A stretch of 63,966 nucleotides of DNA, filler included, from Salisapilia sapeloensis CBS 127946 (lineage: Eukaryota > Protista > Oomycota): assembly GCA_023334545.1 (NCBI GenBank). It is 4 parts of 4 records of this genome, joined end to end, with 100 filler letters (N's around TTAATTAATTAA, not from the genome) between each part and the next. Parts side by side here need not be neighbours in the genome. Positions count along the whole stretch, not along the records: positions 17,308 to 42,566 come from JAADVB010000253.1; 3 more parts are not named here. One strand, 5' to 3'. The notes under the pieces were generated by a model. The model was not told the origin of the DNA. It ran no database searches and saw nothing but the letters and a program-made list of their open reading frames with translations. Each line of letters starts with the position of its first letter. The stretch's first letter is position 1. Both the position numbers and the translations under genes were made by a program. This document shows positions 19,654-42,566 of this stretch, in pieces.

Positions 19654-21489
19654 TTACTTCCTCGGTCGCTGTCGACACACTCGAGCAGCAATAATCGTAA
19701 TGTCATCTGGCATGCCACCTCCCCACATCAAATCATTTTCTTTCGCCAATCGCGCAAACGGCGAGTCGACCGTCGAATCTAAACTCAACTCCCTCGCTTT
19801 CGCCACCAACTTGCGCGTCAGCACTTCCACACTCTCCTCCTTCTTATTCGTAACGTCGCTCACAAGATCCAACAACGTCTCTTCCTCCACATTATCAAAC
19901 AGTCCGTCCGTCGCCAAGATAATCAAGTCTCCTTCCCCCACAGGCACACGCAGCTTGACGCTATCCCCCGGCGTCTCGAACAACGGATTCTCACTCATGT
20001 AGCTATCCGTCCCTCTCTCCTCCGCTAGTTCCTTCTGGACAGATGAAGGAGCAAAACCCAATTGATACGGACAGTTAAAGTAGTGCAGTTGCTGCGGACT
20101 ACGGTAGCTAATGTGTGCTCCTTTACGACGTCCAGCGGGTGTCAAGTCACTCTCGCGGTCGCGAATACGACGGTGGAGAGAGCCATCGAGTGTCCCTCGC
20201 TGTCTCGCGCTCTCCAAGTCCGACTGTCTGTCGCGAATGATGAGGAAGCCAGAGTCACCCAAGTTCACGGCGTGGAGCTCGCCTGACGCTGGATCAAGCG
20301 ACAGGATACACGCTGTGCTACTCCCGACGATCTCCTCTTGTAGGACCGAGTTCCAGGCTGCATGAAGGAGATCCGCAGGATTGATGTACAGCAACGACAT
20401 GTTCGTGCTCGGGTTTTTACTTGGTTTCGAATGTTTCTTTGCTTTGTATAGTTGAGACTGATAGAAAACACGTAACGCTTGATGCGCTTGCTCCATAAGC
20501 TTGGTTGCGTATAACTTGGCGCTCACACCTTTTTCAAACCATGAACCGACACCGTCAGCTACACCAAACGACAGGACATTCGTCGGGCCTGTACTCTGCT
20601 CTGCTGTGAACGTGTCTTCAGACGTAGATGGAGGTGTCTGTTGGTCTAAAGTACCCATAAAATAGGCATCTTCGCCTCCTGTTTCTTCCTTTTGCGGATG
20701 AGGAATCGACAGAGCATACGCGTGGAGGTAGTAGGCAAACTCTGGCTGACGTTTCGTACGAGACTCGTCGTCGTTAAGAAGCGTATTGGACGGAAGACCC
20801 TTGCGAGGTAGGATAAGGTTGATGTAGTCGGATTTGGCGCTGTGTGACTCGTTATCGTTCTGAGCGTCTTGGCGATGGAGGAGAGATGCAATGTCTGTGA
20901 GAGAGACAGTGCCTAGCAATCGGTCTCCTTCTAATACTGGCAGCTCTCCTCTTCCAGACAATGCCATGACAGCTCGACAATTTTCTAACGAATCGTCTGG
21001 AGAGACGTGCAGGACGTCTCGAATGGGCATGCAGATATCTTTCACACTCGTCTTCCAGTTCGTTATATCTTCCCCACTCATCTTAGCAATCTGTTCCATG
21101 ACGACGTGGTTCGTTAATAACCCGACGACTTTTTCACTTTCATTCAAAACAACTAAAATGGAGGAATTATAATTTTTCGCGAGAGACTGCACGGCCGTCG
21201 CGAGAGAGTCGTCTTGGAGTATATAATTCGTCTGTTTCGACCGGAATTGTTTAGACACAGCCAGCAAGTCTGCGACTGTCGAGGGTGGCTTCAGCACTTC
21301 CTCAGCATTGGTACTAGGCGCGCTGGAGAAGGATTGCTGGATACAGCGACTCAATGGGCCATTGCGTACACGATAGCGAACACTAGATGTACGAGTAGGA
21401 GGTAGTGTACTTAGGGAGAGTAGTCGGACCTGTTTTCTAGTCGTATGAGCCGCCAGTCGTGGAGATAAGCGCACGTATAGCGCTCGCAT
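19654..21489 (-). CDS. PTC7: PTC7-family PP2C phosphatase with an N-terminal CBS-domain pair and a likely mitochondrial presequence
   Basis: Arg/Ser/Leu-rich acid-poor N-terminus. CBS-like VVLNESEKVVGLLT and LPVLEGDRLLGTVSLTDI. PTC7 motifs IPHPQK...GGEDAYF, GVADGVGSW, GSSTAC, NLGDSGF, QLHYFNCPYQLG, ATDGLFDNV, PDDITII. Confidence 0.88.
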   Translation of the reverse strand: MRALYVRLSPRLAAHTTRKQVRLLSLSTLPPTRTSSVRYRVRNGPLSRCIQQSFSSAPSTNAEEVLKPPSTVADLLAVSKQFRSKQTNYILQDDSLATAVQSLAKNYNSSILVVLNESEKVVGLLTNHVVMEQIAKMSGEDITNWKTSVKDICMPIRDVLHVSPDDSLENCRAVMALSGRGELPVLEGDRLLGTVSLTDIASLLHRQDAQNDNESHSAKSDYINLILPRKGLPSNTLLNDDESRTKRQPEFAYYLHAYALSIPHPQKEETGGEDAYFMGTLDQQTPPSTSEDTFTAEQSTGPTNVLSFGVADGVGSWFEKGVSAKLYATKLMEQAHQALRVFYQSQLYKAKKHSKPSKNPSTNMSLLYINPADLLHAAWNSVLQEEIVGSSTACILSLDPASGELHAVNLGDSGFLIIRDRQSDLESARQRGTLDGSLHRRIRDRESDLTPAGRRKGAHISYRSPQQLHYFNCPYQLGFAPSSVQKELAEERGTDSYMSENPLFETPGDSVKLRVPVGEGDLIILATDGLFDNVEEETLLDLVSDVTNKKEESVEVLTRKLVAKARELSLDSTVDSPFARLAKENDLMWGGGMPDDITIIAARVCRQRPRK

Positions 21490-28220: not shown

Positions 28221-30194
28221 ATGGCCAAATGGAGCCGAGTCATCTTTCTGTTGCTCGCGCTTGTCCTAGCTTTAGCTCAAGTAAGTCTAGTAACTTGTCA
28301 GTCCGATGGAAATCAAACCACGGACTTTAACAACTCACAGTCTTCCGCTACACAAGAGCCAGCTACTGCTGCTCCGGAGACTTTCCAACCTGAGCAAAAT
28401 ACTAACCAAGAGCCACCTATACAGGCTCAGGACCCAGCAGCTCCCGCCGAACCAGCAGACCCGGCCCAAGCTAATCCACCACCCGAAGGTGTGCCGCCAG
28501 CGGACACGCCAGTGCCTCAGACGCCAGTACCAGGAGAAACAGCGGCACCTGTTGCACCGCCACCTCCAGCAACACCAGTGCCGCCACAACCAGATCCAGC
28601 TGCGACGACGCCACCGCCGCCAGCACCTGACCAACCAGAGCCACCAGCTCAGGAGACACCGCCTCCTGATGCTGATGGAGCTGCTCCACCCAATCCGGAT
28701 ACACCACCTCCAGCTCCTGATACACCTGCACCGTCGCCGACACCAGACGACATTACAACGGCTATTGATTTCTCAGGCATCTACTCTCTCGTTCAGTCAG
28801 GCGGAAGCAGCGAGGCGGCAGATGATGGTATCACAGACACCACTGGAGAGGACGGTACAGGTGCAGATAACGCTCCTGATACACAGGAAGAGGAAAACAC
28901 AGACACTGATACTATAGCCGATGAGAAGGATGCGGACGAGGAGAGTCAAAGCTCTGCTACTGGTGTCAGTGTATCTCAAGAACGTGATCACGGAGCTTCC
29001 ACTGGTGTCCAAGTTGCCATTGGACTTGGTGGTGCAGTCGGTATCGCTGTCGTCGCTCTCATCTTCGTAACGTCAAGAGCTCGTAAGCGCCGTCTAAAGG
29101 AAGAAGACGATAAGTACACGTACAACGTGAAACCGAGTACGAACGACTTGAGTAATTCGGCTATGAACGGTCCAGCGACGATAGGGACATCCACGATGCG
29201 AGCAAGTTCGTCAATTCCGTTCGAACCACATCGAACGCCGTCAGGACAAGATCCTCCAATGAACCAAGTGAACAGCTACGTCCCATCTCCGAAGCAGGGA
29301 GCTACATTCGATAATTCGGTCGACTATAACGACCCGCACTTTGACGTTCTTACGCCTGTGAGTGACATTGTTACTGCGGAAGCAGATACCATGTCGTATC
29401 GGGAGCAGGAACAAGATACGCCAATACTTGATCGTGCGAGCGAAAGAGTCGATGAGTCCATGATGTCGTCGCAATCCTACTTGTACGACAAGTATCGCTC
29501 TACTTCGATGAAAGACTCGGTGCCGGTTATGTCCGATGATTTCTCTCAGCGTGAGAGTAGCTTCTCGACGGTCCATAAGGTACCAGCCCGTCCGTCTGTA
29601 CAGAACGATAGTCGAGCATGGGAGGAATCCGAGTTTAATTTGAAAGAGTCGGACATCATGTCGGACGAAGGTGAGTCCAAGCGGTTTGAGACGAGTGTCT
29701 TTAGTGATGGAGAGGACTTCCCGGATGCACCAGAGCAAGGAGGTGGCTTCTCGGAAGTCATGCGTGGTTTCCAGTCTGAAGCGTCGTCGGACTTTGGTGC
29801 TCGATCGAGCGCTCGACCGTCCTATATGGACAGCTACGTGCAGAGCACGCGAGACACGAGTCGAAGTACGGCTGTAAGCAGATTCCAAAGCGAGTTCTTG
29901 CGTCGATCATCTGCAGTCGAGTCGGACTGTAGTCGTCTAACGATGGAGGAAGTGGACGACGGTCACAACTTCCGGCCGACAAACCTTAGCGAAGACAGTG
30001 CTTTAGATGGATCTGAACGGTCCTTCCGATTGTCTGGAAGCCAACCGCATCCAGAAGGTGGACGTCACACAAGGAGTAACACTATGATCAGTGAATTGGA
30101 GGAAGGGAACGAACGGATGAGCTTTGAAAGTGATGATCGACCTCGTGGCACGAGTGTCTGGGAATCAACACACAAGTTCGAGTATGAGGTATAG
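28221..30194 (+). CDS. Type I membrane protein with a Pro/Ala/Thr-rich mucin-like ectodomain and a long Ser/Asp-rich cytoplasmic tail (657 aa)
   Basis: Signal peptide MAKWSRVIFLLLALVLALAQVSLVTC; PAAP/TPPP low-complexity region; single TM VAIGLGGAVGIAVVALIFVT followed by SRARKRR. Confidence 0.8.
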   Translation: MAKWSRVIFLLLALVLALAQVSLVTCQSDGNQTTDFNNSQSSATQEPATAAPETFQPEQNTNQEPPIQAQDPAAPAEPADPAQANPPPEGVPPADTPVPQTPVPGETAAPVAPPPPATPVPPQPDPAATTPPPPAPDQPEPPAQETPPPDADGAAPPNPDTPPPAPDTPAPSPTPDDITTAIDFSGIYSLVQSGGSSEAADDGITDTTGEDGTGADNAPDTQEEENTDTDTIADEKDADEESQSSATGVSVSQERDHGASTGVQVAIGLGGAVGIAVVALIFVTSRARKRRLKEEDDKYTYNVKPSTNDLSNSAMNGPATIGTSTMRASSSIPFEPHRTPSGQDPPMNQVNSYVPSPKQGATFDNSVDYNDPHFDVLTPVSDIVTAEADTMSYREQEQDTPILDRASERVDESMMSSQSYLYDKYRSTSMKDSVPVMSDDFSQRESSFSTVHKVPARPSVQNDSRAWEESEFNLKESDIMSDEGESKRFETSVFSDGEDFPDAPEQGGGFSEVMRGFQSEASSDFGARSSARPSYMDSYVQSTRDTSRSTAVSRFQSEFLRRSSAVESDCSRLTMEEVDDGHNFRPTNLSEDSALDGSERSFRLSGSQPHPEGGRHTRSNTMISELEEGNERMSFESDDRPRGTSVWESTHKFEYEV

Positions 30195-30627: not shown

Positions 30628-31360
30628 CGGAGAGATACAGCGAGTGTCCACGAAGATCAGTTGTCCGGGTCTTTATGGAACATATTCGCAGCGGTAGTTA
30701 CTTTGAGGTAGCAACAGGTGGTTGAAGCGAAAGTGTAGGGACACTTGCTGAGTTTGGCATAGTACCCAACTTCATCTGATAACTATCTACTTTTGGTCTC
30801 ACTCCATTCCTCATGGGAAGCATCTGGCTCTTGCAAAAGTATTTTGGTGTCACGGATAGCGATATCATAGACCACATATCCTTATATCGATTTTGACGAT
30901 CATGCCACGATGATCACCACGTTGGATTTGGCATGTCTTGGCACGATAAGATGCACACAGCATATAGTAACTGCTTGGACAAATAAAGTTCAAACTTATA
31001 AATGGAAGAAAAGATGATCCTGTGATGCAGAAAGGAAAGTATCAGAAAGCAAACGTCGATCTGGACGAGCAACCTGACTGGAAATAGTGGGAGCAACGGA
31101 TGTGCATGCTGATTAGAACAAACGCGATGGGTGCCACGATCTTTGAATCGGAACATGAAAACGGGTGGTCATAACTTTTCAATCCACGCTCGTGCATCAA
31201 TCGACAGCTCCTTACCACATCCTAACAGATAGAAGATCGATACAACATGAGTGGTAACCTTTCACACGAAGAGATCGCAAATTCCCAAGTTACCACATAT
31301 ACGGCCTATCCAAACTCTTTTGAACGAAAAACGCAAGGTATCAAGTCTTTCCTATTCCTC

Positions 31361-34300
31361 CTATTCCTCCTTTACCTCCTTTTCCTCCTTTTCCTCTTCC
31401 ACATCCTTCTTTTCTTCACCCTCGTCCGTCTTGGGTTTCTTCACAGGCGACTCAGTACCTTCCGGTGCCGATCGCTTCGCAGCACCAGTCGATGTCAACG
31501 ACACAACGTTTGACGGATTCGATCCACTCGCGGCACCGAATCGCGCCAAACGAGCATTCAATTTCTTCTCATCTACCGCATCCGACTCCTTACTCTCGGT
31601 CGCGCTGCTTCCCGCCGATACTGTCGGAGACGACGGAACCGGAAGAGCAATACCCGGCTTTCCAAACACCAAATTGCTCGCACTACCCGATCCGAACGTG
31701 ACATTTTCACTCAATGAAGTCGTGGTCGTGGTCGTCGCTGGAGCTGTCGTCTTAGCTGCAGCCTTCGCCGGTTTCGCCAGTCGGTTCTTAAACGATTGGA
31801 GCGCAACTAATCGCAACTGGGCTTCTGCATCCGACTCACTATCCTCTTTACTCTCCTTGACACTCGAAGCAGGCGTAAATGCCGGCGCTTCCGAGTTCAA
31901 TGTCGGTTTCGGCGTCCCGCCCACAGGTTGCGCCGTCACTACTGTGCTAGTCGTCGCTGTTACAGGTGTGGATGACACCGGCGGCGATGGCGTGAATGAT
32001 GAACTCACAGTTGTACTAAATGAACTCGACTTTTTCTCCGGTACAGCTTCACTCGTCTCCATCGATGTTGAAGGCACGAGAGGAACAGACGCACTCGTCA
32101 TCGTGCCACTAGACGCTGCTGTATGTACAATAGAAGATGTAGCAGTAGAAGACACAGGAGCTGTACTGGTACTAGTACTAGTACTATCCTCCGTCGCAGC
32201 AACAGTCGACGGAGTAGATGTTTCTGGTACACTAGTGGTACTATCAGATACCGTCGAAATGACCTTGGAAGGCGTCGTGGAAGTACTCTCCGTACTACTC
32301 GCAGCCTTCACCTCACCTGCTGCACTGGCTGATGTCGACGTGCTAGGAGCAGAAGTTGTTGGCAACGACACTCCAGTCGTACTCGCACTGGGAACAGAGG
32401 TCGATGCAACTGGTACTTCACTGGTAATAGGCGCTTCTGCAGACTTCGAAGCCTCCTTGGCCGTCGTCGAGGGCTCTTTGGCCAGCATCTTCACTGGCGT
32501 AGTAGTCGGTACCGTCGTCCCACTCGGTTTGGACACAGGAATCTGCGTGGCAGCAGTTGACTGTCCACTAGCGGTCGATGGTACAATCTTACTCGGTACA
32601 TTCGCCTTGCTCTGCGTCGACACCGGTGCCGACACTCCTGTACTTGCACCAGTCGACGCCGCCGGCACCTTAGCCTTAGCAGCCGGTCGCTGTGTCGCCT
32701 TCCCAGCCAACGGCGGCAGTCCAGTCTTCTTCTCTGCCTGCTGCAACTTGTTCTTAAGCTCTGCATTCTCCTTCTTACTCGCTCTAACGCCATTCATCAA
32801 ACTTTTATTCAACTCCTTGAGCTGATGCACTTTATCCTCCAATGCCTTCGTTTCGCTCGCACTCGACGTCTCCTTGAGCTGTGTCTCCAATGCACTCACC
32901 TGTGCATTCTTCTCACTCACAGTTGCATTCAACTCCTGTGCTTTCTGTTTCCAGTTCTTCGCAAACGTCTTGATCTTATCATACTGCTCTCTCCATTTCG
33001 TCGTATTGGCATCTTCATCCATCTTTTCCTTCTTCAGCCGTTCAATCTCGTCTTCCAATTGCTTCACTTGTCCTTGCAAAGCTTCATGTTCCACCGGATC
33101 AATTTGCTGATACTTGTCCACCAACTGCGACACACGTTGCTTCCACTTATCATTACTCTGCTGCATGAATGACACTTCATCTTCCAAAGCAGACACCTTA
33201 GCTTCCAATTCCTCCTTCTGTGTCTTCAGAGGAGATACCTGCTCTTTGTAACTAGACACTTGTGCCTCTCGGCTCTTCATCTTCGTCGTCAAGTCCTTGA
33301 CTTGACTACGTAAAGTGGCATTCGACTCTCGAAGAAGACTTAACTGCTCGAGACTTTCTCGACTCTCCTCCATCTCCTGTGGACTAGTACTAGACACTTG
33401 TGCACGTAAGCGCTTGACACTCGCCTCCAACGTCTCCACCTGCGTCTCTAAACGCACCTTGTCGTCACTCGCCACTTGCTGCAGCGCATGCAGCCGATCA
33501 TTCTCCTTCTTCAGGTACGTCACCAACGACGTCAGTTCTGACGAATCCCCAGTCTCCTGTCCCTTAAGCTGAGCAGCCGTCGTCTCCAGCTGTCGATACA
33601 AGAGATCCTGTTGCTCCTGCAGCTCCTTCCGTGCCGTCTGGACCTCTTCTAACTGCGTCTCCATCGCCTCCACCTTTTTCTTCCATCCATCCTCTTGTGT
33701 CTTCAGTCGTTCTTCCAACGTCTGCACCTGCATCTTGAGCTCTCGACTCTTACTCTTACTCTTCCGTACTTGCTCCTGAAGATCCTTGGAACTCGTCATC
33801 GTCTCGGAATGCAACATCAACTCTCGTTCATACTTGTCTTGCGTCGCCTCGACCTTGCTCTTCATCTCGTCTTTCTTTTGTTTCAGCGCATTCTTTTCTT
33901 TCGTCAGATGCTCAATCTGTTGCTCCAACGTCTCTTTTTCCTGTTCAGAAGACTTGACACGACGTACGAGGTCATCCATGTCAGTACGAACTTGATTCTC
34001 TTCTGTCATACGAGTCTTCATCTCACTCTGCATCGAATGTACACGAGATACGAGTGCATTCTTCTCTTGCGATACAAGATGCAGACGCATCTGTAACTCA
34101 TGATGACGCGTCTTACAACTCTCTTCACGATCCTTCCAGCTCGTTTCATATGACGACAAGAGATCCTTGTATCGACTGACATTCGACATATGCGTATGGA
34201 TGCTCTTGCAAGCCTTATCACGTTCCGTCTTGACGATCTCGAGCTCCGACTCGAGGGAAGAGACCTTGGCAGAAGTAGCAGAAGGGAGACCTTGCTTCAT

Positions 34301-36926
34301 CCAATTGTCCATCTTGTCCTTTTCTCCTTCCAGACGCTTTATCGTCTTGTCATACGTCTCGATCTTTTCCGATAAGAGAGACACTTGATGCGTCTGGGAC
34401 GTCTTCTCCTCTTGCAATTTAGACACTTGCTTCTCCAACTGCTTCTTCTCCTGTTCCAACGACAAGATACGTGCGTGATACGTCGTCTCATTCGTCTGCA
34501 TCTTCTCCTCCACCTGTCGACGCAACGCCGTCGCTTCCTCCACTTGTGTCTGCAGTCGATGCATCTCCTTTTCATCTCTCGCTTCTCGCATCTCCTCTGC
34601 CTTTCGCGCATGTTCCATCAATTGCAACAACCTCGAACTCTCATCTCGTGCTCGAACCACCTCCTTCTGCTTCTCCTCTATACTCCTTTCATACGAAGCA
34701 ACTTGTTCCTTGCAACTCTTCATCTCCATCGATAGACGCTGGTTTTCATAACGTACATCTGAGAGTTTCTCCTCTTGTTCCGACAATACTTTCTCCCGCT
34801 TCACCTCTTGCGACGACAATGTCGACACTTGTACTTGTAATCTCTCCTTGTCCTTCTGCATCTCCTCCAAACTAGTCGATAGAGACGTCGATTTATCCTC
34901 CAACAGACGTACTTGCGTCTCCAATTCCACTCGACGTAGATTCAATCGATGTTTTTCATCTCGAAGCACTTGGTTCTGACTATCTAAGAGCTCATACGAC
35001 TTACGACTCTCCTTCTTATACTCCTCCAACTCTTGCTGGGCGTCACTTCCGATAGATGGCACGACTGTTGGCTCTGTAGGTAGACTCGATGCGTCGTGTT
35101 GAGATAGAAGAGACCGGTACATGTCTCTCTGCTTGACAATGCGATCGATCACGTCCTTCTCTTCCTCTCGAGCTTTACGAAGCTCTTCTAATTGACGATA
35201 CGCGTCTTGTAGTTTCTCATTCGAAGTATCTTCCATCGACATGACACGCTCTTCATTCGAATCATCGGATGGTACGAGAGCCTTGAGCTCTTCGACATAA
35301 GCACGTAACATCTCGTTCTTCTCCTGCAACTGCTTGACATTATCAAAACGAATCATATCTGTCGAATCGATCGACTTTGTCTCCGTCTCTTCATGTGGAC
35401 GGAATAAAAGATGTTGTATCTGGTCACTCATCTGAAGCTTACTCGTCTCTAAGACACTCACACGAGACCTTAGTTCTTTACATTCCTTCTCCAACTGATG
35501 CTTCTGCCCTTGACACGTCGTCAATTGATTCATCGTGACATCCAGACGATCACTTAGGTACGAATATTCTTGCTGAAGACGAGCATGGTCCATACGAAGT
35601 GACATGATGATCGGAGCCTTCTCCTGCACTTCTTTCACGATCTGATCTAAATACGTCTGCACTTGTTCCTTCTCGTCCGTTACTTGCACCACTTGATCCT
35701 GGAGCTTAGTTGCTTCAGACATCAACTGCTGCTTCGTATAGTGCGCATACGTAGCTGAAGGAGAGACTTGATGCTCGACAATCGCTCTGTCGAGATTAGA
35801 CGAACTAGATGCTTCCTTTGCCTTTACAAGCTCCTCTTCTAACGCTCGAATGCGTTCCTCCGATCGACTACTTTGCTCTCGGAAGAGACTTTCGACTTCA
35901 TCTTTCATCGTCTGCTTCTCCTCTTCCTTCTGTGCTTCAGCTTGAGCTAATTGCGATCGAAGACGCTCACATACAGACTGGAGATCACGAATCTGTCCAT
36001 TCGCGTCTTCCGAACTGGACTTGTATAGCTCGACGAGACGTGTTTGTGATCGGATTTCTTGCTTATAATTCTCTTCTGCACTTAGGAATTGTGCATTCGT
36101 TTCTCGAAGAGATTCTCGAGCATCAATAAGTTCTCGATCGACCTTTTGATATTGTTGACGAGCATTCGCAAGTTGTTTTTCGAGAGAAGTGTACTCTTCG
36201 GACTTATCACGACGTAAATCTTCGACTTCATCCGATTGATTCAATACTTGTTGACGTAAACGATGGATTTCACCATTCTTCGCTTCCACTTGACTATGAA
36301 GCTCCGTCACTTGTGACTCTAAGCTTTCGACACGCGCCTCAAGACGTTCCTTCGCGGAGGACAAAGGTGTGAATTGAGACTCGAGCTCTGTGGCACGAGC
36401 CACAGCTTTTGACTCTTCCTTCTGAGACTCTAATAGACGAGCACGCTGGTCTTTCGTATACGCCTGGAGCTCTTCAATCTCAATGAGACGACGCTCTGCA
36501 AGCGCTCGAGCGTTCTGGAGCTTGTGATCTAATTGCTGCTTTTCTAAAGATGCAGTCGAAGCTTCTTCCTTGTACTTAGTCTGGAGCTCATTATCTGACG
36601 AGATGGATGCTTTCGTACGCTCCAACTCGTTTTCTATCAAGCATGTGAGCACGGTGTCGTAGGGAGATATTAGTCAAGATCAAACGTACGAGTACGATCC
36701 AATTCAGTTCGCAGCTTTTTACGTGCATCCTCCGATACTTCTAACTCACTCTGAAGGTGAACGTACTTAGATTCGAGCTCATGTAGACGTTGTTCTAATC
36801 ACAAATCGTTCAATAATAGCTCTTGTGGATGCAAATAAAGAATGCACGAAAGGAGATTAGGAGGGTTCATCTACCTTGATTCACGGCCGCAGCCTCTTCC
36901 TTGGCCTCCTGAGCATCCGTCGACAT
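31361..36926 (-). CDS. TPR: Nuclear basket nucleoporin TPR/Mlp1; short 5' exons plus one very large exon
   Basis: Over 1,700 aa of coiled coil with TPR-conserved motifs IVKEVQEKAPII, FDNVKQLQEKNEMLR, IVKQRDMYRSLL and QDKYERELMLH...QQDLLYRQLE (TPR/MLP1/2 domain). Ser/Thr-rich tail with FG motifs. Likely start MSTDAQEAKEE at 36926. Confidence 0.88.
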
Positions 36927-38107
36927 ACTTGTGGACGTATGCAAACGCACGTATAGGCCACTAGCAACGGTCGGACGCGGTGTACTCCTTCCGCCTTCTT
37001 CGGTCCCAAACTTGGTGCGAACGGAGCAGGATATGCCGTATTTAGCTGGACATTATATAGTGATTTTTATATAATAATGTCCGAATAAAGGGAAGATGTA
37101 AAGGATGGCAGTATATGTTTTATCGGTTTCACATACTGCCACGTTGTCAGCAGAAGCTTTCTGGTCATCTACCTGCATGCAAGTCATCATCTTTATACCT
37201 TTGCTTGTGGTGATACTATAGATACGTGATAGAGAATACACTGTGCGTTGCCCTACGGCTGTGAATAGCTTTTTTATTATGATATGCGAATGCTTTATGT
37301 ACATTCACTCTTTCGACAAGTACATCTTGATGTTTCTTGCTACTCGTCTACTCGTGTAGTATCTAGACTACTCTTGTTACCACGTCCTTGTAAAAGTTTG
37401 TCGATACAATCTTCTTCTTTGATCGCAGTAAACAGTGTTCATGCTGAATAGCACTCCTAAATCAATGGCCTACTCGAGTTCAATGCTTTTACTCCTTTAC
37501 TACGAATGCAGGCACCAACGCAGAAGGAAAGAATGTGCTCAGCTGCTGACTGCACGGTCGTAGAAATAGCATGACAGAGACTTTCGCTCTATATCCATCA
37601 CAAGGCTGATTATGTATTCCAATCATTGGATACCGACTTAGAGAGGAATATCAGCGGAATATATACGTGGAAACCTAGTGACCCCGTTTTCGTTTGATGA
37701 AAGGATCCATTGAAATGGATCTAATGCAGTAGCATAAAGCTTCCTCTCGCACAACATCGATACAACTAGGTATATAATGAATAGAAACTCGGTGAAGGCA
37801 TCGTGTCTTTCGTGATATCAAGTTTAAAGGAAAGAAACGAGAGGATCATAACAGTACAAATGACTACAGCAAATATGCTAACGAAGATATATACAATGAG
37901 TATCAAGACGTGATCTAATCTCACCCATGCCTTCCTGCGAGTGTATCCTGCTTACGTGATTGTATGAATTTCTATGCGTCAGCGCTATAAGGCATGTCAG
38001 ATGGTCGATGAGATTCACGTAACGGTCATCGCTTTATTACACAAGACAAATCTTTCATCTGTACTCATCCATTTCCAGTTTCCCCCCTCTCCTATCAAGC
38101 ACTCAGC

Positions 38108-39469
38108 ATGCGCTTCCTAATAATTGCTTTACTGTCTACGCTTTCATCCATTGAAAGCTGTAGTGACTTTCGATATAACTCGACGCCTGATGACGCTTCC
38201 ATCTTGAGCGGCCGCACGATGGATTTTGTTCCCGACTTAGAGACCTTAATTGAAATCGTACCTCGCGGTACTAGTATGCAAGAACCTCCGATCCGAGGCT
38301 GCGCCAATTGTCCAGACTATGGATGGGAATCCAAGTACGGCTTCGTTGCTATGAATGTCTTCGGTGTAAACGTCGCAACGGATGGACTGAATGAAAAAGG
38401 TCTATCCGCTGGATGGCTGTACCTCACCGGTTCCAAGTACCCCATACCAGAGGCCACTGAACCCGACCACGAGGTGTCTCCTTTTGACCCGGAAGCGTCA
38501 CCAAAGGAAATCCCAGTCGTTACGTCCACATGTACCTACTTCCTCGGCAACTTTGCCACTGTCCAAGAAGTAAAAGACGCTATAAAGAACCATGACATCC
38601 AGATTGCAGCAGTGGACGTATCAGCTGTATCCATCCTACGGGCACATACGGACGCATACTCGGTGGATGGTTCTCAACTGCATGTATCCGTGCATGACGC
38701 AACAGGCGCCAATCTCGTTCTTGAGTTCCTGGATGGAAAACTGCGCATGTATGACAACCTGAATAATGTGCTTACGAATGATCCTCCGTTACAAGAGCAA
38801 TTGAAACTATTGAAAGAACATGGTCTAAAGCATCTTCCTGGTGGATACGAACCAGCAGATCGTTTCCAACGCCTCTCCCTCCTGAACCATGCTGCGTCTG
38901 TGTACGGGTACAAGACGTTGAACAATCATGACGACGTTACGTACTTGCAAGCAACGAAGAAGCAACGGCAAGTGTCGGATGTTGTGCACATTCTTAACAC
39001 CGTTGAGCTTCCAACTTTAGCGGCAACGCAATGGACACTTGTACATGACCATACGGACAAGGCTCTCTACTTCCGTAGCACGATGAACTTTGTTCTTCGT
39101 AAGATTGATCTTTCTATAATCGATTTCTCCCACGGACAACCTCGACAAGCGATACCGGTGACGATGGGTGACTGGCATGTTGACCTGACGCCTGCATTAG
39201 TGTCCACGGACAACCAGTTGCATACATCTGACTTGCCATCTCGATCCCAAATTTTGGCTTTAAAGAAAGGAGAAACGGATGCTTCTTTAAAAGAATTGGT
39301 GAAAACAAGCTACTCGTCTGTAGAAGCAAAAGGCTCAAGCAGCTTACGTGACTTAGTGTTGGTCCTCGCTGGGGTGGTCGTTGGCGTCGCCGTCACAATG
39401 ATCGTTGCTCATCGACGCACAATTCAAAGCAAACTGTTCAAGAAGCAGAGTTACCAGGACATCGCGTAA
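38108..39469 (+). CDS. Secreted, C-terminally membrane-anchored Ntn-hydrolase of the choloylglycine hydrolase/penicillin V acylase (C59) family
   Basis: Signal peptide ending IES immediately before CSDF (N-terminal Cys nucleophile); GRTMDF; DGLNEKGL; HDATG; VLTNDPP; LPGGYEPADRF; TQWT...D...LYF; TM LVLVLAGVVVGVAVTMIVA near the C-terminus. Confidence 0.88.
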   Translation: MRFLIIALLSTLSSIESCSDFRYNSTPDDASILSGRTMDFVPDLETLIEIVPRGTSMQEPPIRGCANCPDYGWESKYGFVAMNVFGVNVATDGLNEKGLSAGWLYLTGSKYPIPEATEPDHEVSPFDPEASPKEIPVVTSTCTYFLGNFATVQEVKDAIKNHDIQIAAVDVSAVSILRAHTDAYSVDGSQLHVSVHDATGANLVLEFLDGKLRMYDNLNNVLTNDPPLQEQLKLLKEHGLKHLPGGYEPADRFQRLSLLNHAASVYGYKTLNNHDDVTYLQATKKQRQVSDVVHILNTVELPTLAATQWTLVHDHTDKALYFRSTMNFVLRKIDLSIIDFSHGQPRQAIPVTMGDWHVDLTPALVSTDNQLHTSDLPSRSQILALKKGETDASLKELVKTSYSSVEAKGSSSLRDLVLVLAGVVVGVAVTMIVAHRRTIQSKLFKKQSYQDIA

Positions 39470-39924
39470 GAGCTACGAAATGATAAGTAGACTACTAAAA
39501 TCCGAGAGTCTAATGAATTTGTCATTACACTAGTAAATACATCTACTACGTTCGTACGTATAGGTTAAATATTCTCATCACTAAGTGACAGTAGTTGTGG
39601 TTTCTACTTGTCCTGTATGGTCATGAATAAGATTTAAAAGTAGGAATAAATATGTATTTCCATCCATTTACTTTTATATCGCGCATTTTATTCATCAAGT
39701 ACAAATGTACTCGGCTAGACAAGGTAATTAACCTCTTCAGTCGATCAAGATATCTTTATACAAGTACAGATATAGTCACTAGAAACAAGAGAATCTATGC
39801 ATTCCTACTAGAAGCAAATATGAAGAAAGGAATGAAATGAGAAAACCATTCAGTTGCATTCGACTAGAAACGACTTTGCTTCTCCAGCATTCACTTTCAG
39901 CTGGCAAACGGCACATGATCCGTC

Positions 39925-40119
39925 TTACCAATTGTACCATATCGGCCAGCCACCACGATGCGGATATCCAATCGACTCTTTTCCGCTGGAACCTTCAGGA
40001 TCTTCTTCATTGGCTAAAGATGCTGCAGCCGATTCCAAGTTTCCACGAAGGTTGTCTTCGGCTTGGATGCCACTCATAGCACCGACGAGTCCGAGGAGAA
40101 GAAGAGCTGTCTTGAACAT
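39925..40119 (-). CDS. 64-aa secreted peptide precursor (peptide A)
   Basis: MFKTALLLLGLVGAMSGIQA-EDNLRG...EEDPEGSSGK-ESIGYPHRGGWPIWYNW*. Signal peptide, acidic pro-region, and a C-terminus shared with peptide B. Confidence 0.85.
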   Translation of the reverse strand: MFKTALLLLGLVGAMSGIQAEDNLRGNLESAAASLANEEDPEGSSGKESIGYPHRGGWPIWYNW

Positions 40120-40158
40120 CTTGTAGCTTATAGAGAATTAAAGCTTGAGCTGTCGAGC

Positions 40159-40175
40159 GCAAATTTGAGAATGAA
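40159..40175 (-). promoter_or_regulatory. Inr+FPR core promoter of the peptide A gene
   Basis: TTCATTCTCAAATTTGC on the minus strand, about 40 nt upstream of the ATG at 40119. A related CCATTCTCAAAAAT (41117-41104) precedes peptide B. Confidence 0.65.
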
Positions 40176-40867
40176 GAGAAGGATGCAAGTCGGCTTTAAG
40201 GCAGCCTATTGCTATGGCTGTCGTAAACTATCACGTATGACACAGTATGCACTGCCTCTATTCTAATATCTCTTGCTATCTACTTGGCATCTAGCTATGC
40301 GAAAGAAGTACATAGAGAAGTACAGGTCGATGGTCACATGTCCATAATCCTAGGTCTACAAGTGTAATCTTGATTGGAAACAACATGGGATAGATAGGAG
40401 TAAATTGCAGTTGCGGAATCCCTTGATTGACCCAAGAAGGCAGAGGGGTAACAGCAAGATGCAGCGAAAGCAATGTTACTAGAGGTTACCGACCGAAGTT
40501 GACTTTGCCTTCAATGCACACGTTTCTACCACGTCGATATACATGTACAAGAGAAAAGATATCTTTCCGGTAATCTTACCGATGGGAACACATCCAAGGT
40601 AGAAATAAAATAGCAATTCTTGGTTTCTCTTTAGATAGTGACACTGTGTCGATCATCAACCGTTACTAGACGCCTCGAGAAGCATTTGCATCAGTACTCT
40701 GCAGTCGCAGTATCTCAACCGAAGAACACTGATAATCAACAACAAAAAGAATAATGTGCGGAAATGATAATGAAGATCTGGAAAGTCAACTTCATTCCAT
40801 TTAGCGCTACGATTACTTCTTGTTGCTTCCATTACGCGTGCACGGTCATAATGATGGTCTTCTTGCT

Positions 40868-41071
40868 TTACCAATATGGCCACCAAGGCATTCCATTGCG
40901 TTGAGGATAGCCAATGCTTTCGTGCATACCAGAGCTTTCCGATACGTTCGAAAATAATATTTTGAGCGTGTCGAGCCCTTCGACGTCCGGCTCGCTTCGG
41001 AGATAGACGTCTGCTTGAGCGATAAAGGTTGCGATAGAAAGATAAGCGCAGAGTAGAAACGCCTTCATCAT
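40868..41071 (-). CDS. 67-aa secreted peptide precursor (peptide B), paralogue of peptide A
   Basis: MMKAFLLCAYLSIATFIAQA-DVYLRS...SESSGMH-ESIGYPQRNGMPWWPYW*. Confidence 0.85.
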   Translation of the reverse strand: MMKAFLLCAYLSIATFIAQADVYLRSEPDVEGLDTLKILFSNVSESSGMHESIGYPQRNGMPWWPYW

Positions 41072-41905
41072 CTTCAGATGCTGACGTGTGCGACCTTACT
41101 AGTATTTTTGAGAATGGTGCAAGGAAGGCAATGAGACCACCGGAAAGATCTCTATATCTTTAATGACAACGTTTCTTTTCCTTCGTGCGATCTACCCGAG
41201 TTCAATTGAAAGGGAAACATGCAGATAAGATCAACGGCTATGTTGTAGATAATTCGTTACCACATCTCCAATATGTCGAGAGAAAAGGGTAAGATGTTTC
41301 CGCTGGGATGCCCTATCTCAAATCGTTTCTATATTCATATGAACAAAGTAGCTATTTGCTCTCTACGCTTCAACATGGATTCTCATACATCATGTCACTA
41401 GTAGAACTCAGTATCACTATGATTACACGTAGGACAGTGGAAAATACATACGTCAACCAGGACAAGAAATTCATCCGTCAATTCATGTACAGAACGATTA
41501 GGCACGTATCGGCAGTTATAGGGGATGCGTGTGACTCTGCTATGGTAACTGTCATTTTCTGACCACACTTCATGAACCTTGATTAGAGATCCTGGACCGT
41601 GGGACTTATGACGAGCTAGTGAGAACAGACCACTTTCGATGCTGCTTGATATTAATATCATGTTATTCAAATTTCCATGCATCAACCGCCTAGTGTCATC
41701 TGGATTATACCATTGCCATTGGATTTCTAATCAAACCGATTCGGCGACAAAATACTGTCCAGTTCCTTCTCACCTTTGGACTTGAGAAAACATGGAACTT
41801 CGCGTACTAAAATAAAAACGATCAGACCATTCAGTATGACTCTTGTGATTCTCATTATTCAATTTCACTCGGATCCTCCATACCGCCAATTTCCATCGCT
41901 TTAAT

Positions 41906-42566
41906 ATGACTGAACATGAGTACGCGTCGGTACTAACACCGAGTGAGGCATCCAAGTCCAGTGGTTCAACTCCTTTGCCGATGCTAGGTACCTCAAGCGA
42001 TTCTTCACGTCCGTCGTTTGGTACTCGTGTACTTCGTGCTGGATACGCCGTTCGATGGAAACTAGCTGAGACCTTCTTCGGAAGACCGCTTCCGTTCCTC
42101 ACTTCTCGCTTCGATATCAAGCTTGGTGACCTGTTCATCACATTACCGATCATCGTCGTGACTTTAGCCGTGAATGCCATCAAGTGTAGCAATGGAGATG
42201 TCAAGCCTAGCGGTACCTTACCCAACATCTCTCTCATGCTCGTCGTGATCATGGCCATCCGGAACAACATCGTCCTCCACTTCTTAGCCGGCATGTCCTT
42301 TGAGCGAGCGTTGATGTACCATAAACTCATGGGTGTCATGACCCTCCTACTTGGAGCCTTACATGGTGCTTCTTACCTCGTCGCTAAAGATAATGATGGT
42401 AAGTGGAAAAGTGGTCTCCCCTTACTCATCCTCCTCGGTACCATCTTCCTCTTTGCGTTGCCTCCCATTCGACGCAAATTCTTTCACCTCTTCCTACCGA
42501 TGCACATCCTCCTCTTCGTTGCCATCGTCATCATCGCGTTGATCCACGCAGGTGGTCTTGTCATGG
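41906..42566 (+). CDS. Ferric reductase-like (FRE/NOX superfamily) transmembrane protein, 3' end cut by the gap
   Basis: IRNN...GMSFERALMYHK, LHG, RRKFFHLFLPMH and IHA give the four heme-ligand histidines of the ferric reductase TM domain. Confidence 0.85.

Follow-up and report, generated by a model that had tools for sequence, protein, structure and literature searches.

A pair of small minus-strand genes with a conserved Trp-rich C-terminus, candidate secreted peptide precursors, in the oomycete Salisapilia sapeloensis

Layout of the pepA/pepB locus

The stretch of DNA analysed here (hereafter the window) comprises 63,966 nt, filler included, in four parts from four records of the Salisapilia sapeloensis CBS 127946 assembly GCA_023334545.1. 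The 25-kb piece that comes from JAADVB010000253.1 (positions 17,308 to 42,566) carries two small paralogous ORFs, which we call pepA and pepB (Table 1). An ORF scan places both on the minus strand, with a gap of 748 bp between them. BLASTP of the pair gives 36% identity, mostly contributed by the tail. Both products end in ESIGYPxRxGxPxWxxW with a TAA directly after. No third copy of this tail motif was found in the 25-kb piece, where pepA and pepB are the sole copies.

Table 1. Features of the pepA/pepB locus, with positions counted along the window
Feature	Position	Strand	Description
pepA	39925..40119	-	Small ORF, 64 aa; residues 1-20 signal-peptide-like (MFKTALLLLGLVGAMSGIQA); NLR at residues 23-25; tail ESIGYPHRGGWPIWYNW, then stop
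pepA C-terminal core	39925..39978	-	17 codons and stop; the module under selection
pepA core-promoter block	40164..40188	-	Reads TTGCATCCTTCTCTTCATTCTCAAA; Inr TCATTCT 55 nt upstream of ATG, followed by FPR-like CAAATTTG
Probable pepB 3′ UTR	40800..40867	-	Part of the X1 RNA contig past the stop codon
pepB	40868..41071	-	Paralogue, 67 aa; residues 1-20 signal-peptide-like (MMKAFLLCAYLSIATFIAQA); YLR at residues 23-25; tail ESIGYPQRNGMPWWPYW, then stop
pepB C-terminal core	40868..40921	-	17 codons and stop
pepB core-promoter block	41107..41131	-	Reads TTGCCTTCCTTGCACCATTCTCAAA; Inr-like CCATTCT 46 nt upstream of ATG

The two N-termini are signal-peptide-like as judged from sequence: each has a Lys at position 3, a hydrophobic core of 12-15 residues (KD9 2.3-2.7) and an IQA or AQA end, and this small-x-small QA end closes the putative signal region in both pepA and pepB. 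Three residues past the putative signal peptide, an aligned Leu-Arg pair (L24-R25) is invariant, and the region that follows is acidic and divergent, with a net charge of -5 in pepA and -4 in pepB. Cysteines are absent from pepA and limited in pepB to a single one within the signal peptide, so that neither mature part contains any. KR and RR dipeptides do not occur anywhere along the two products, and no conserved processing site precedes the tail: the Glu is preceded by G-K in pepA but by M-H in pepB, with no dibasic or other site in common. AlphaFold predicts only the helix of the signal peptide, and the remainder has a pLDDT of ~50, which fits an unstructured peptide. A prepropeptide-like layout, a familiar architecture, is supported by these predicted elements.

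Most of what the initial annotation had said about this layout is borne out. The coordinates and translations of the two same-strand ORFs of 64-67 aa, about 750 bp apart, match exactly; the xLR motif that it had assigned to both was found as the aligned NLR and YLR; and the acidic and divergent pro-regions are reflected in the net charges given above and in a dN of 0.78. It had also stated that annotation often misses such small ORFs, and indeed neither ORF is called in any protein database examined.

Each gene is also preceded by an Inr-type promoter, as had been proposed, with TCATTCT at -55 in pepA and CCATTCT at -46 in pepB. A CAAA(T/A)-rich sequence follows the Inr in both promoter blocks, and the two 25-nt blocks are 72% identical and constitute a direct repeat (D1) whose spacing of 943 is the spacing of the genes. 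For this reason, the earlier statement that signal peptides, pro-regions and UTRs do not align stands only in part: the signal and pro-regions are divergent (dN ~0.8), but the upstream regions share the 25-nt block. TCATTCT is the commonest form of the oomycete INR and sits 50-100 nt from start codons, and the combination of INR and FPR has been linked to stage-regulated, highly expressed genes and is enriched also in infection-related genes (PMC3599244). In the expressed CBAH neighbour described below, CCATTTCC is found at -39, where the CBAH RNA contigs start. The shared block shows for each of the two genes a predicted initiator-type core promoter of its own, conserved between them.

Transcription was assessed with four RNA runs of the same organism (X1-X4), used as Logan contigs, which are strandless and from which rare transcripts are dropped. 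In one of the four runs (X1), pepB is represented by a single strandless contig of 204 nt (40800-41003), with a depth of 6.3 versus 11-15 for the neighbouring genes. This contig takes in pepB over its 3′ two thirds and continues for 68 nt past the stop, colinear with the genome and with no joint. The two flanking genes, CBAH and a ferric reductase, are fully covered by the RNA contigs of the four runs and the depth of the intergenic DNA is 0, so the pepB contig is not carry-over of DNA. Thus, weak transcription of pepB in culture is probable. In the case of pepA, no RNA contig was found in X1-X4, in contigs that drop rare transcripts, and the only match was to the DNA run X5; transcription of pepA is unsupported.

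pepA is convergent with the CBAH (choloylglycine-hydrolase-family) gene at 38108-39469 (+), from whose transcript end it is separated by ~380 nt, and pepB is divergent from a ferric-reductase/NOX-type oxidoreductase gene starting at 41906. The remaining piece contains ordinary genes, including those for a CBS-PP2C, an FHA-PP2C and a TPR/Mlp nucleoporin. All best matches of CBAH are from oomycetes (Globisporangium, Pythium, Phytophthora, Aphanomyces, Albugo and Saprolegnia; 40-50% identity). At its C-terminus, the CBS-PP2C shares 73% identity with a Pythium oligandrum protein whose gene lies ~10 kb from the P. oligandrum CBAH, which means that the linkage is partly conserved. Both results agree with the oomycete host named at the outset. 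The linkage of CBS-PP2C/SpoIIE (19654-21489, -) and CBAH is common to P. oligandrum SPLM01000077.1 (1-726 and 10001-11359 of that locus); the intervening genes differ, and a lipase array occupies there the place where pepA and pepB stand here.

Some features of the neighbouring genes deserve mention in their own right. The CBAH/Ntn-hydrolase matches Pfam PF02275 (E 2e-22), its signal peptide ends exactly at Cys18, the expected N-terminal nucleophile, its C-terminus consists of a hydrophobic helix followed by basic residues, and its RNA contigs extend over 38058-39547 in 4/4 runs; these features suggest that the product may be a membrane-anchored extracellular amidase. A 657-aa ORF at 28221-30194 (+), with no Pfam match, has a signal peptide, a long Pro/Thr/Ala-rich (mucin-/extensin-like) N-terminal half, one TM helix and a Ser-rich cytoplasmic tail. 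Another ORF, of 524 aa and low complexity (31251-32825, +), lies antisense to the TPR/Mlp gene (1763 aa; 31361-36652, -), over its C-terminal part, which is rich in Ser/Thr/Ala/Val. Its presence is most likely explained by the sense-strand composition.

Divergence of the pair and searches for relatives

Which part of these genes has been kept since they were duplicated? Comparison of pepA with pepB by region (Nei-Gojobori) gave a pS of 0.76-0.89, that is, saturated in every region of the pair, and a dN of 0.82 in the signal region, 0.78 in the pro-region and, at its lowest, 0.41 in the tail. The tails are identical at 11/17 positions, a conservation that amounts to one pairwise comparison within a two-member family. 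Block shuffling, repeated 200 times, yielded 8 at the most, and that once; when the 102 ATG ORFs of 40-150 aa in the piece were compared pairwise, the runner-up had a C-terminal 17-aa identity of 7. At the DNA level, 7/11 of the identical tail residues use different codons, including TCG versus AGC for Ser, and the identity at first, second and third codon positions of the tail is 11, 13 and 7 of 18 codons, which is a signature of coding selection in this frame. Taken together, these results leave no room for chance ORFs, gene conversion or repeats at the DNA level.

By these measures, pepA and pepB are an old tandem duplication with protein-level purifying selection on the tail, and the comparison shows this selection to be confined to the last 17-23 residues, the exact C-terminus included. 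The initial annotation had reached the same view, that of old paralogues with selection focused on the tail, and the different codons that it had listed for shared residues (E GAG/GAA, S TCG/AGC, G GGA/GGC, P CCG/CCT, R CGT/CGC) were all recovered; the dN/dS calculation by region, the test that it had named, gave the values stated above. An opposite-strand ORF of 90 aa (39854-40126, +) overlies pepA. We rejected it as a real gene, given that it has no conserved counterpart at pepB and that the codon-position pattern fits the minus frame.

Relatives of the tail were sought at several levels. A word-indexed search, whether queried with pepA or with the alignment of the pair, found no tail homologue in 5.8e9 proteins, and an exhaustive profile search found none in 1.84e9 representative proteins, where only repeat artefacts were returned, namely P0001 and two bacterial repeat proteins. 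P0001 (551 aa) was discarded as a relative: it is a nine-fold tandem repeat ORF, its unit contains THESIGYPKMDIS (HESIGYPK x9), and a heptapeptide match is multiplied by the repeats. It looks like a translated satellite repeat, unrelated to pepA/pepB. The exact products are absent from the protein databases, in collections that do not include this organism's own proteins. At the DNA level, the scans covered metagenomes, prokaryotes and two loci: a degenerate pattern for GYPxRxGxPxWxxW-stop had a single match in the JGI metagenomes, off-frame within a bacterial gene, and three chance matches in prokaryotic genomes, and no ORF with the tail motif was found at the syntenic P. oligandrum locus or at one Logan CBAH locus.

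Domain and structure resources were equally uninformative. Neither product matches Pfam even at E<=10, and the PDB sequences gave nothing significant. The only match there, to Hikeshi/DUF775 (PDB 3ww0 residues 21-69 against profile positions 20-67, PEGSSGKESIGYPHRGGWPIW/ESIGYPQRNGMPWW), has an E of 0.09 and no Pfam support, and we attribute it to chance. Neighbours in the ESM Atlas have scores in the chance range, those of pepB including several metazoan neuropeptide precursors, and a literature search for the string SIGYP returned only unrelated AAV-targeting peptides and abbreviations.

The wider oomycete family envisaged at first was therefore not recovered in proteins, metagenomes, prokaryotes or the P. 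oligandrum locus, by searches of low power: pepA against pepB itself scores 31 bits, under the reporting thresholds, small ORFs are seldom called and the motif is short. The best reading would be that pepA and pepB constitute a new, so far two-member, lineage-restricted family. Nevertheless, with dS saturated, the duplication would be so old that the family is to be expected in related organisms as well, and this counts against the explanation that we otherwise consider best.

Candidate products and alternative explanations

What would pepA and pepB encode? Our preferred reading, to which we assign a probability of roughly 0.5, is that they are real, anciently duplicated, intron-less oomycete genes for small secreted pre(pro)peptides whose tail is functional. 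The 20-residue signal peptide, with its (I/A)-Q-A cleavage site, would send the product into the ER, and the secreted product would be an unstructured, acidic chain of 44-47 residues. Because purifying selection acts only on the last 17-23 residues, the function would be located there, in (S)SG-xx-ESIGYPxRxGxPxWxxW-COOH, and the free Trp at the C-terminus, which both copies have kept, would belong to the recognised element. The acidic part most likely serves as spacer or pro-region. Outside the cell, the tail, which is neutral, aromatic and rich in Pro/Gly, would act as a ligand-like peptide, released by proteolysis or still attached, with self or a partner as its target. It is possibly modified, the candidates being pGlu, as an N-terminal Glu could cyclise, Hyp and C-mannosyl-Trp at WxxW. 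The production of an exact 17-mer by processing is not supported by any conserved cleavage site, the residue before Glu being K in one copy and H in the other.

Processing may also be unnecessary. If pepA and pepB were unprocessed orphan small secreted proteins, the whole 44-47 aa would act in the apoplast, for example with the aromatic tail on cellulose/glucan or on a host or partner target, and no hormone-like signalling would be involved. The putative signal peptide and the lineage restriction fit this explanation, as does a tail that is not preceded by a conserved cleavage site, and aromatic residues spaced as WxxW(xxW) could stack on polysaccharide. The enrichment of INR+FPR promoters among stage-regulated and infection-related genes (PMC3599244) also agrees with it. 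Yet the middle of the protein evolves as fast as the signal peptide (dN ~0.8) and so contributes little beyond spacing, neither product has mature Cys or a folded domain, and the locus is a housekeeping, gene-dense region, not one of the effector type. On balance we hold this explanation to be unlikely, though far from implausible.

In our view, pepA and pepB encode neither lytic antimicrobial peptides nor translocated RxLR effectors. As antimicrobial or membrane-active peptides, Trp/Pro-rich tails would be freed from an anionic pro-piece in the manner of indolicidin and tritrpticin, and the W/P-rich C-termini (MPWWPYW and WPIWYNW) do lie behind an acidic pro-region and a putative signal peptide. 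Known Trp-rich antimicrobial peptides, however, are strongly cationic. Here, the richness in Trp and Pro is present and the strong positive charge is absent: the 17-aa tails have a net charge of about 0 at pH 7 (-0.1/-0.2) and a negative GRAVY, and there is no cathelin-like pro-domain, all of which makes this reading improbable.

Still less probable is that the pair represents divergent RxLR-type translocated effectors, in which xLR would be a degenerate RxLR processing site with a dEER-like acidic stretch after it, and the part with effector function would be very short. The invariance of L24-R25 within a divergent region just past the signal peptide, with acidic residues after it, is what such effectors would offer. 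The first position of the motif, on the other hand, is D or V instead of R (DNLR/VYLR, residues 22-25), the motif lies 3 residues past the predicted cleavage site instead of 20-40, EER is absent, and no RXLR or WY Pfam match was obtained at E<=10. In addition, 11/17 of the last residues match, whereas effector C-termini usually diversify.

The remaining explanations have, in our opinion, hardly any chance. One of them considers pepA and pepB as RiPP-like precursors whose core is cross-linked or trimmed by the neighbouring CBAH/C59 Ntn-hydrolase (38108-39469) and the ferric-reductase/NOX-type oxidoreductase (from 41906). In several RiPP classes the C-terminal core is rich in Trp, Tyr and Pro, as it is here, and the flanking genes encode a secreted or anchored amidohydrolase and a flavocytochrome. 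Against such a role, the P. oligandrum CBAH orthologue has no adjoining peptide gene, the two neighbours are members of families that are widespread in oomycetes, with expression also where the peptide genes show none, and no dedicated maturase family is present in the piece.

It is just as hard to credit that pepA and pepB are first exons of larger genes, with TG|GTAA(G/A) at the stop serving as splice donor and the tail as exon end. ATTGGTAA is invariant at both stops (39925-39932 and 40868-40875, -), and GTAAGA and GTAAAG resemble 5′ splice sites. Nonetheless, downstream on the minus strand every frame is rich in stops and the two regions have no coding similarity to each other (best E 0.26), the X1 RNA contig is unspliced across the pepB stop for 68 nt, and only ~380 nt extend from pepA to the end of the CBAH transcript. 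As neither a downstream exon nor spliced RNA was found, this reading was rejected as largely refuted. Finally, non-functional ORFs, arisen by chance or as decaying duplicates, would account for the lack of homologues, the lack of RNA support for pepA and the fact that neither ORF is called in any database, but the frames are intact, the tail, the stop register and the promoter core have been kept in spite of saturated synonymous divergence, and chance is excluded by the shuffles, which makes this explanation barely tenable.

Likeness to known peptide systems and possible significance

Leaving these alternatives aside, how do pepA and pepB, read as small secreted pre(pro)peptides, compare with peptide systems already described? 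The plant CLE, IDA/IDL, CEP, PIP and RGF precursors have in common with them a signal peptide, which in pepA and pepB is a predicted one, a fast-evolving variable region and a single conserved block at the extreme C-terminus. Precursors of the CLE, IDA, CEP, PIP and RGF classes are ~60-120 aa long, carry a Pro/Gly-containing C-terminal motif of 12-20 aa, are often tandemly duplicated and are missed by annotation. In contrast to the plant classes, pepA and pepB belong to an oomycete, are not similar in sequence to the plant motifs and have no Pfam match, and their tail is Trp-rich and ends in Trp, whereas the plant peptides end in His or Asn. Ascomycete precursors of the alpha-factor type (S. 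cerevisiae MF-alpha and the filamentous WCxxxGQPCW type) resemble the pair, if this is secreted as predicted, in being secreted prepro-proteins whose mature peptide, of 10-17 aa, is aromatic or Trp-rich and includes a G-x-P element. These, however, contain several tandem copies, Kex2 KR sites and Ste13 dipeptides, as opposed to the single C-terminal copy and the absence of any dibasic site in pepA/pepB, and homology to alpha-factor-type precursors was not detectable by word and profile searches.

The remaining likenesses are with defence peptides, effectors and toxins. The cathelicidin-derived indolicidin and tritrpticin are short W/P-rich C-terminal peptides behind a signal peptide and an anionic pro-piece, an arrangement that is predicted for the pepA/pepB tails too; pepA and pepB differ in that the tails are uncharged, that there is no cathelin domain and that the lineage is unrelated. 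Oomycete RxLR effectors share the host group and the order of signal peptide (predicted in pepA and pepB), Leu-Arg motif and acidic residues near the N-terminus, but pepA and pepB have D/V-x-L-R, placed too near the signal peptide, no EER, WY fold or Pfam RXLR, and a C-terminus that is conserved and not diversifying. The PcF/SCR toxins of oomycetes are similarly small (50-70 aa), secreted, as pepA and pepB are predicted to be, and often lineage-restricted; they are defined by conserved disulfide-forming cysteines, in contrast to the Cys-free mature parts of pepA and pepB.

It is possible, if decidedly unlikely, that pepA and pepB represent the first secreted peptide signals known to be genetically encoded in an oomycete. 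A Trp-rich peptide of ~17 residues, with the C-terminal Trp free and perhaps with a pGlu or C-mannosyl modification, would be set free from the acidic propeptide. Either a partner or the organism's own cells would sense it, the latter for example in relation to density, the behaviour of zoospores or sexual development. A role as hormone or pheromone is likewise possible, at equally long odds. No ribosomal peptide hormone or pheromone of an oomycete was found in the literature searched and, to our knowledge, sterols and diterpenes rather than peptides make up the hormones so far described in this group. If the tail peptides were real extracellular signals, they would open up peptide-based cell-cell communication in oomycetes, a group that includes major plant and animal pathogens. 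If the genes merely encoded another pair of orphan small secreted proteins, the result would be an addition to the annotation, of local interest. The case also illustrates a route to unannotated small-ORF genes by sequence alone, namely the comparison of paralogues whose synonymous sites are saturated and which are conserved only at the C-terminus.

As for the tryptophans of the tail, they are spaced as WxxWxxW in pepA (39925-39945, -) and as WxxW in pepB (40868-40882, -), a spacing that corresponds to the tryptophan C-mannosylation consensus of secretory proteins.
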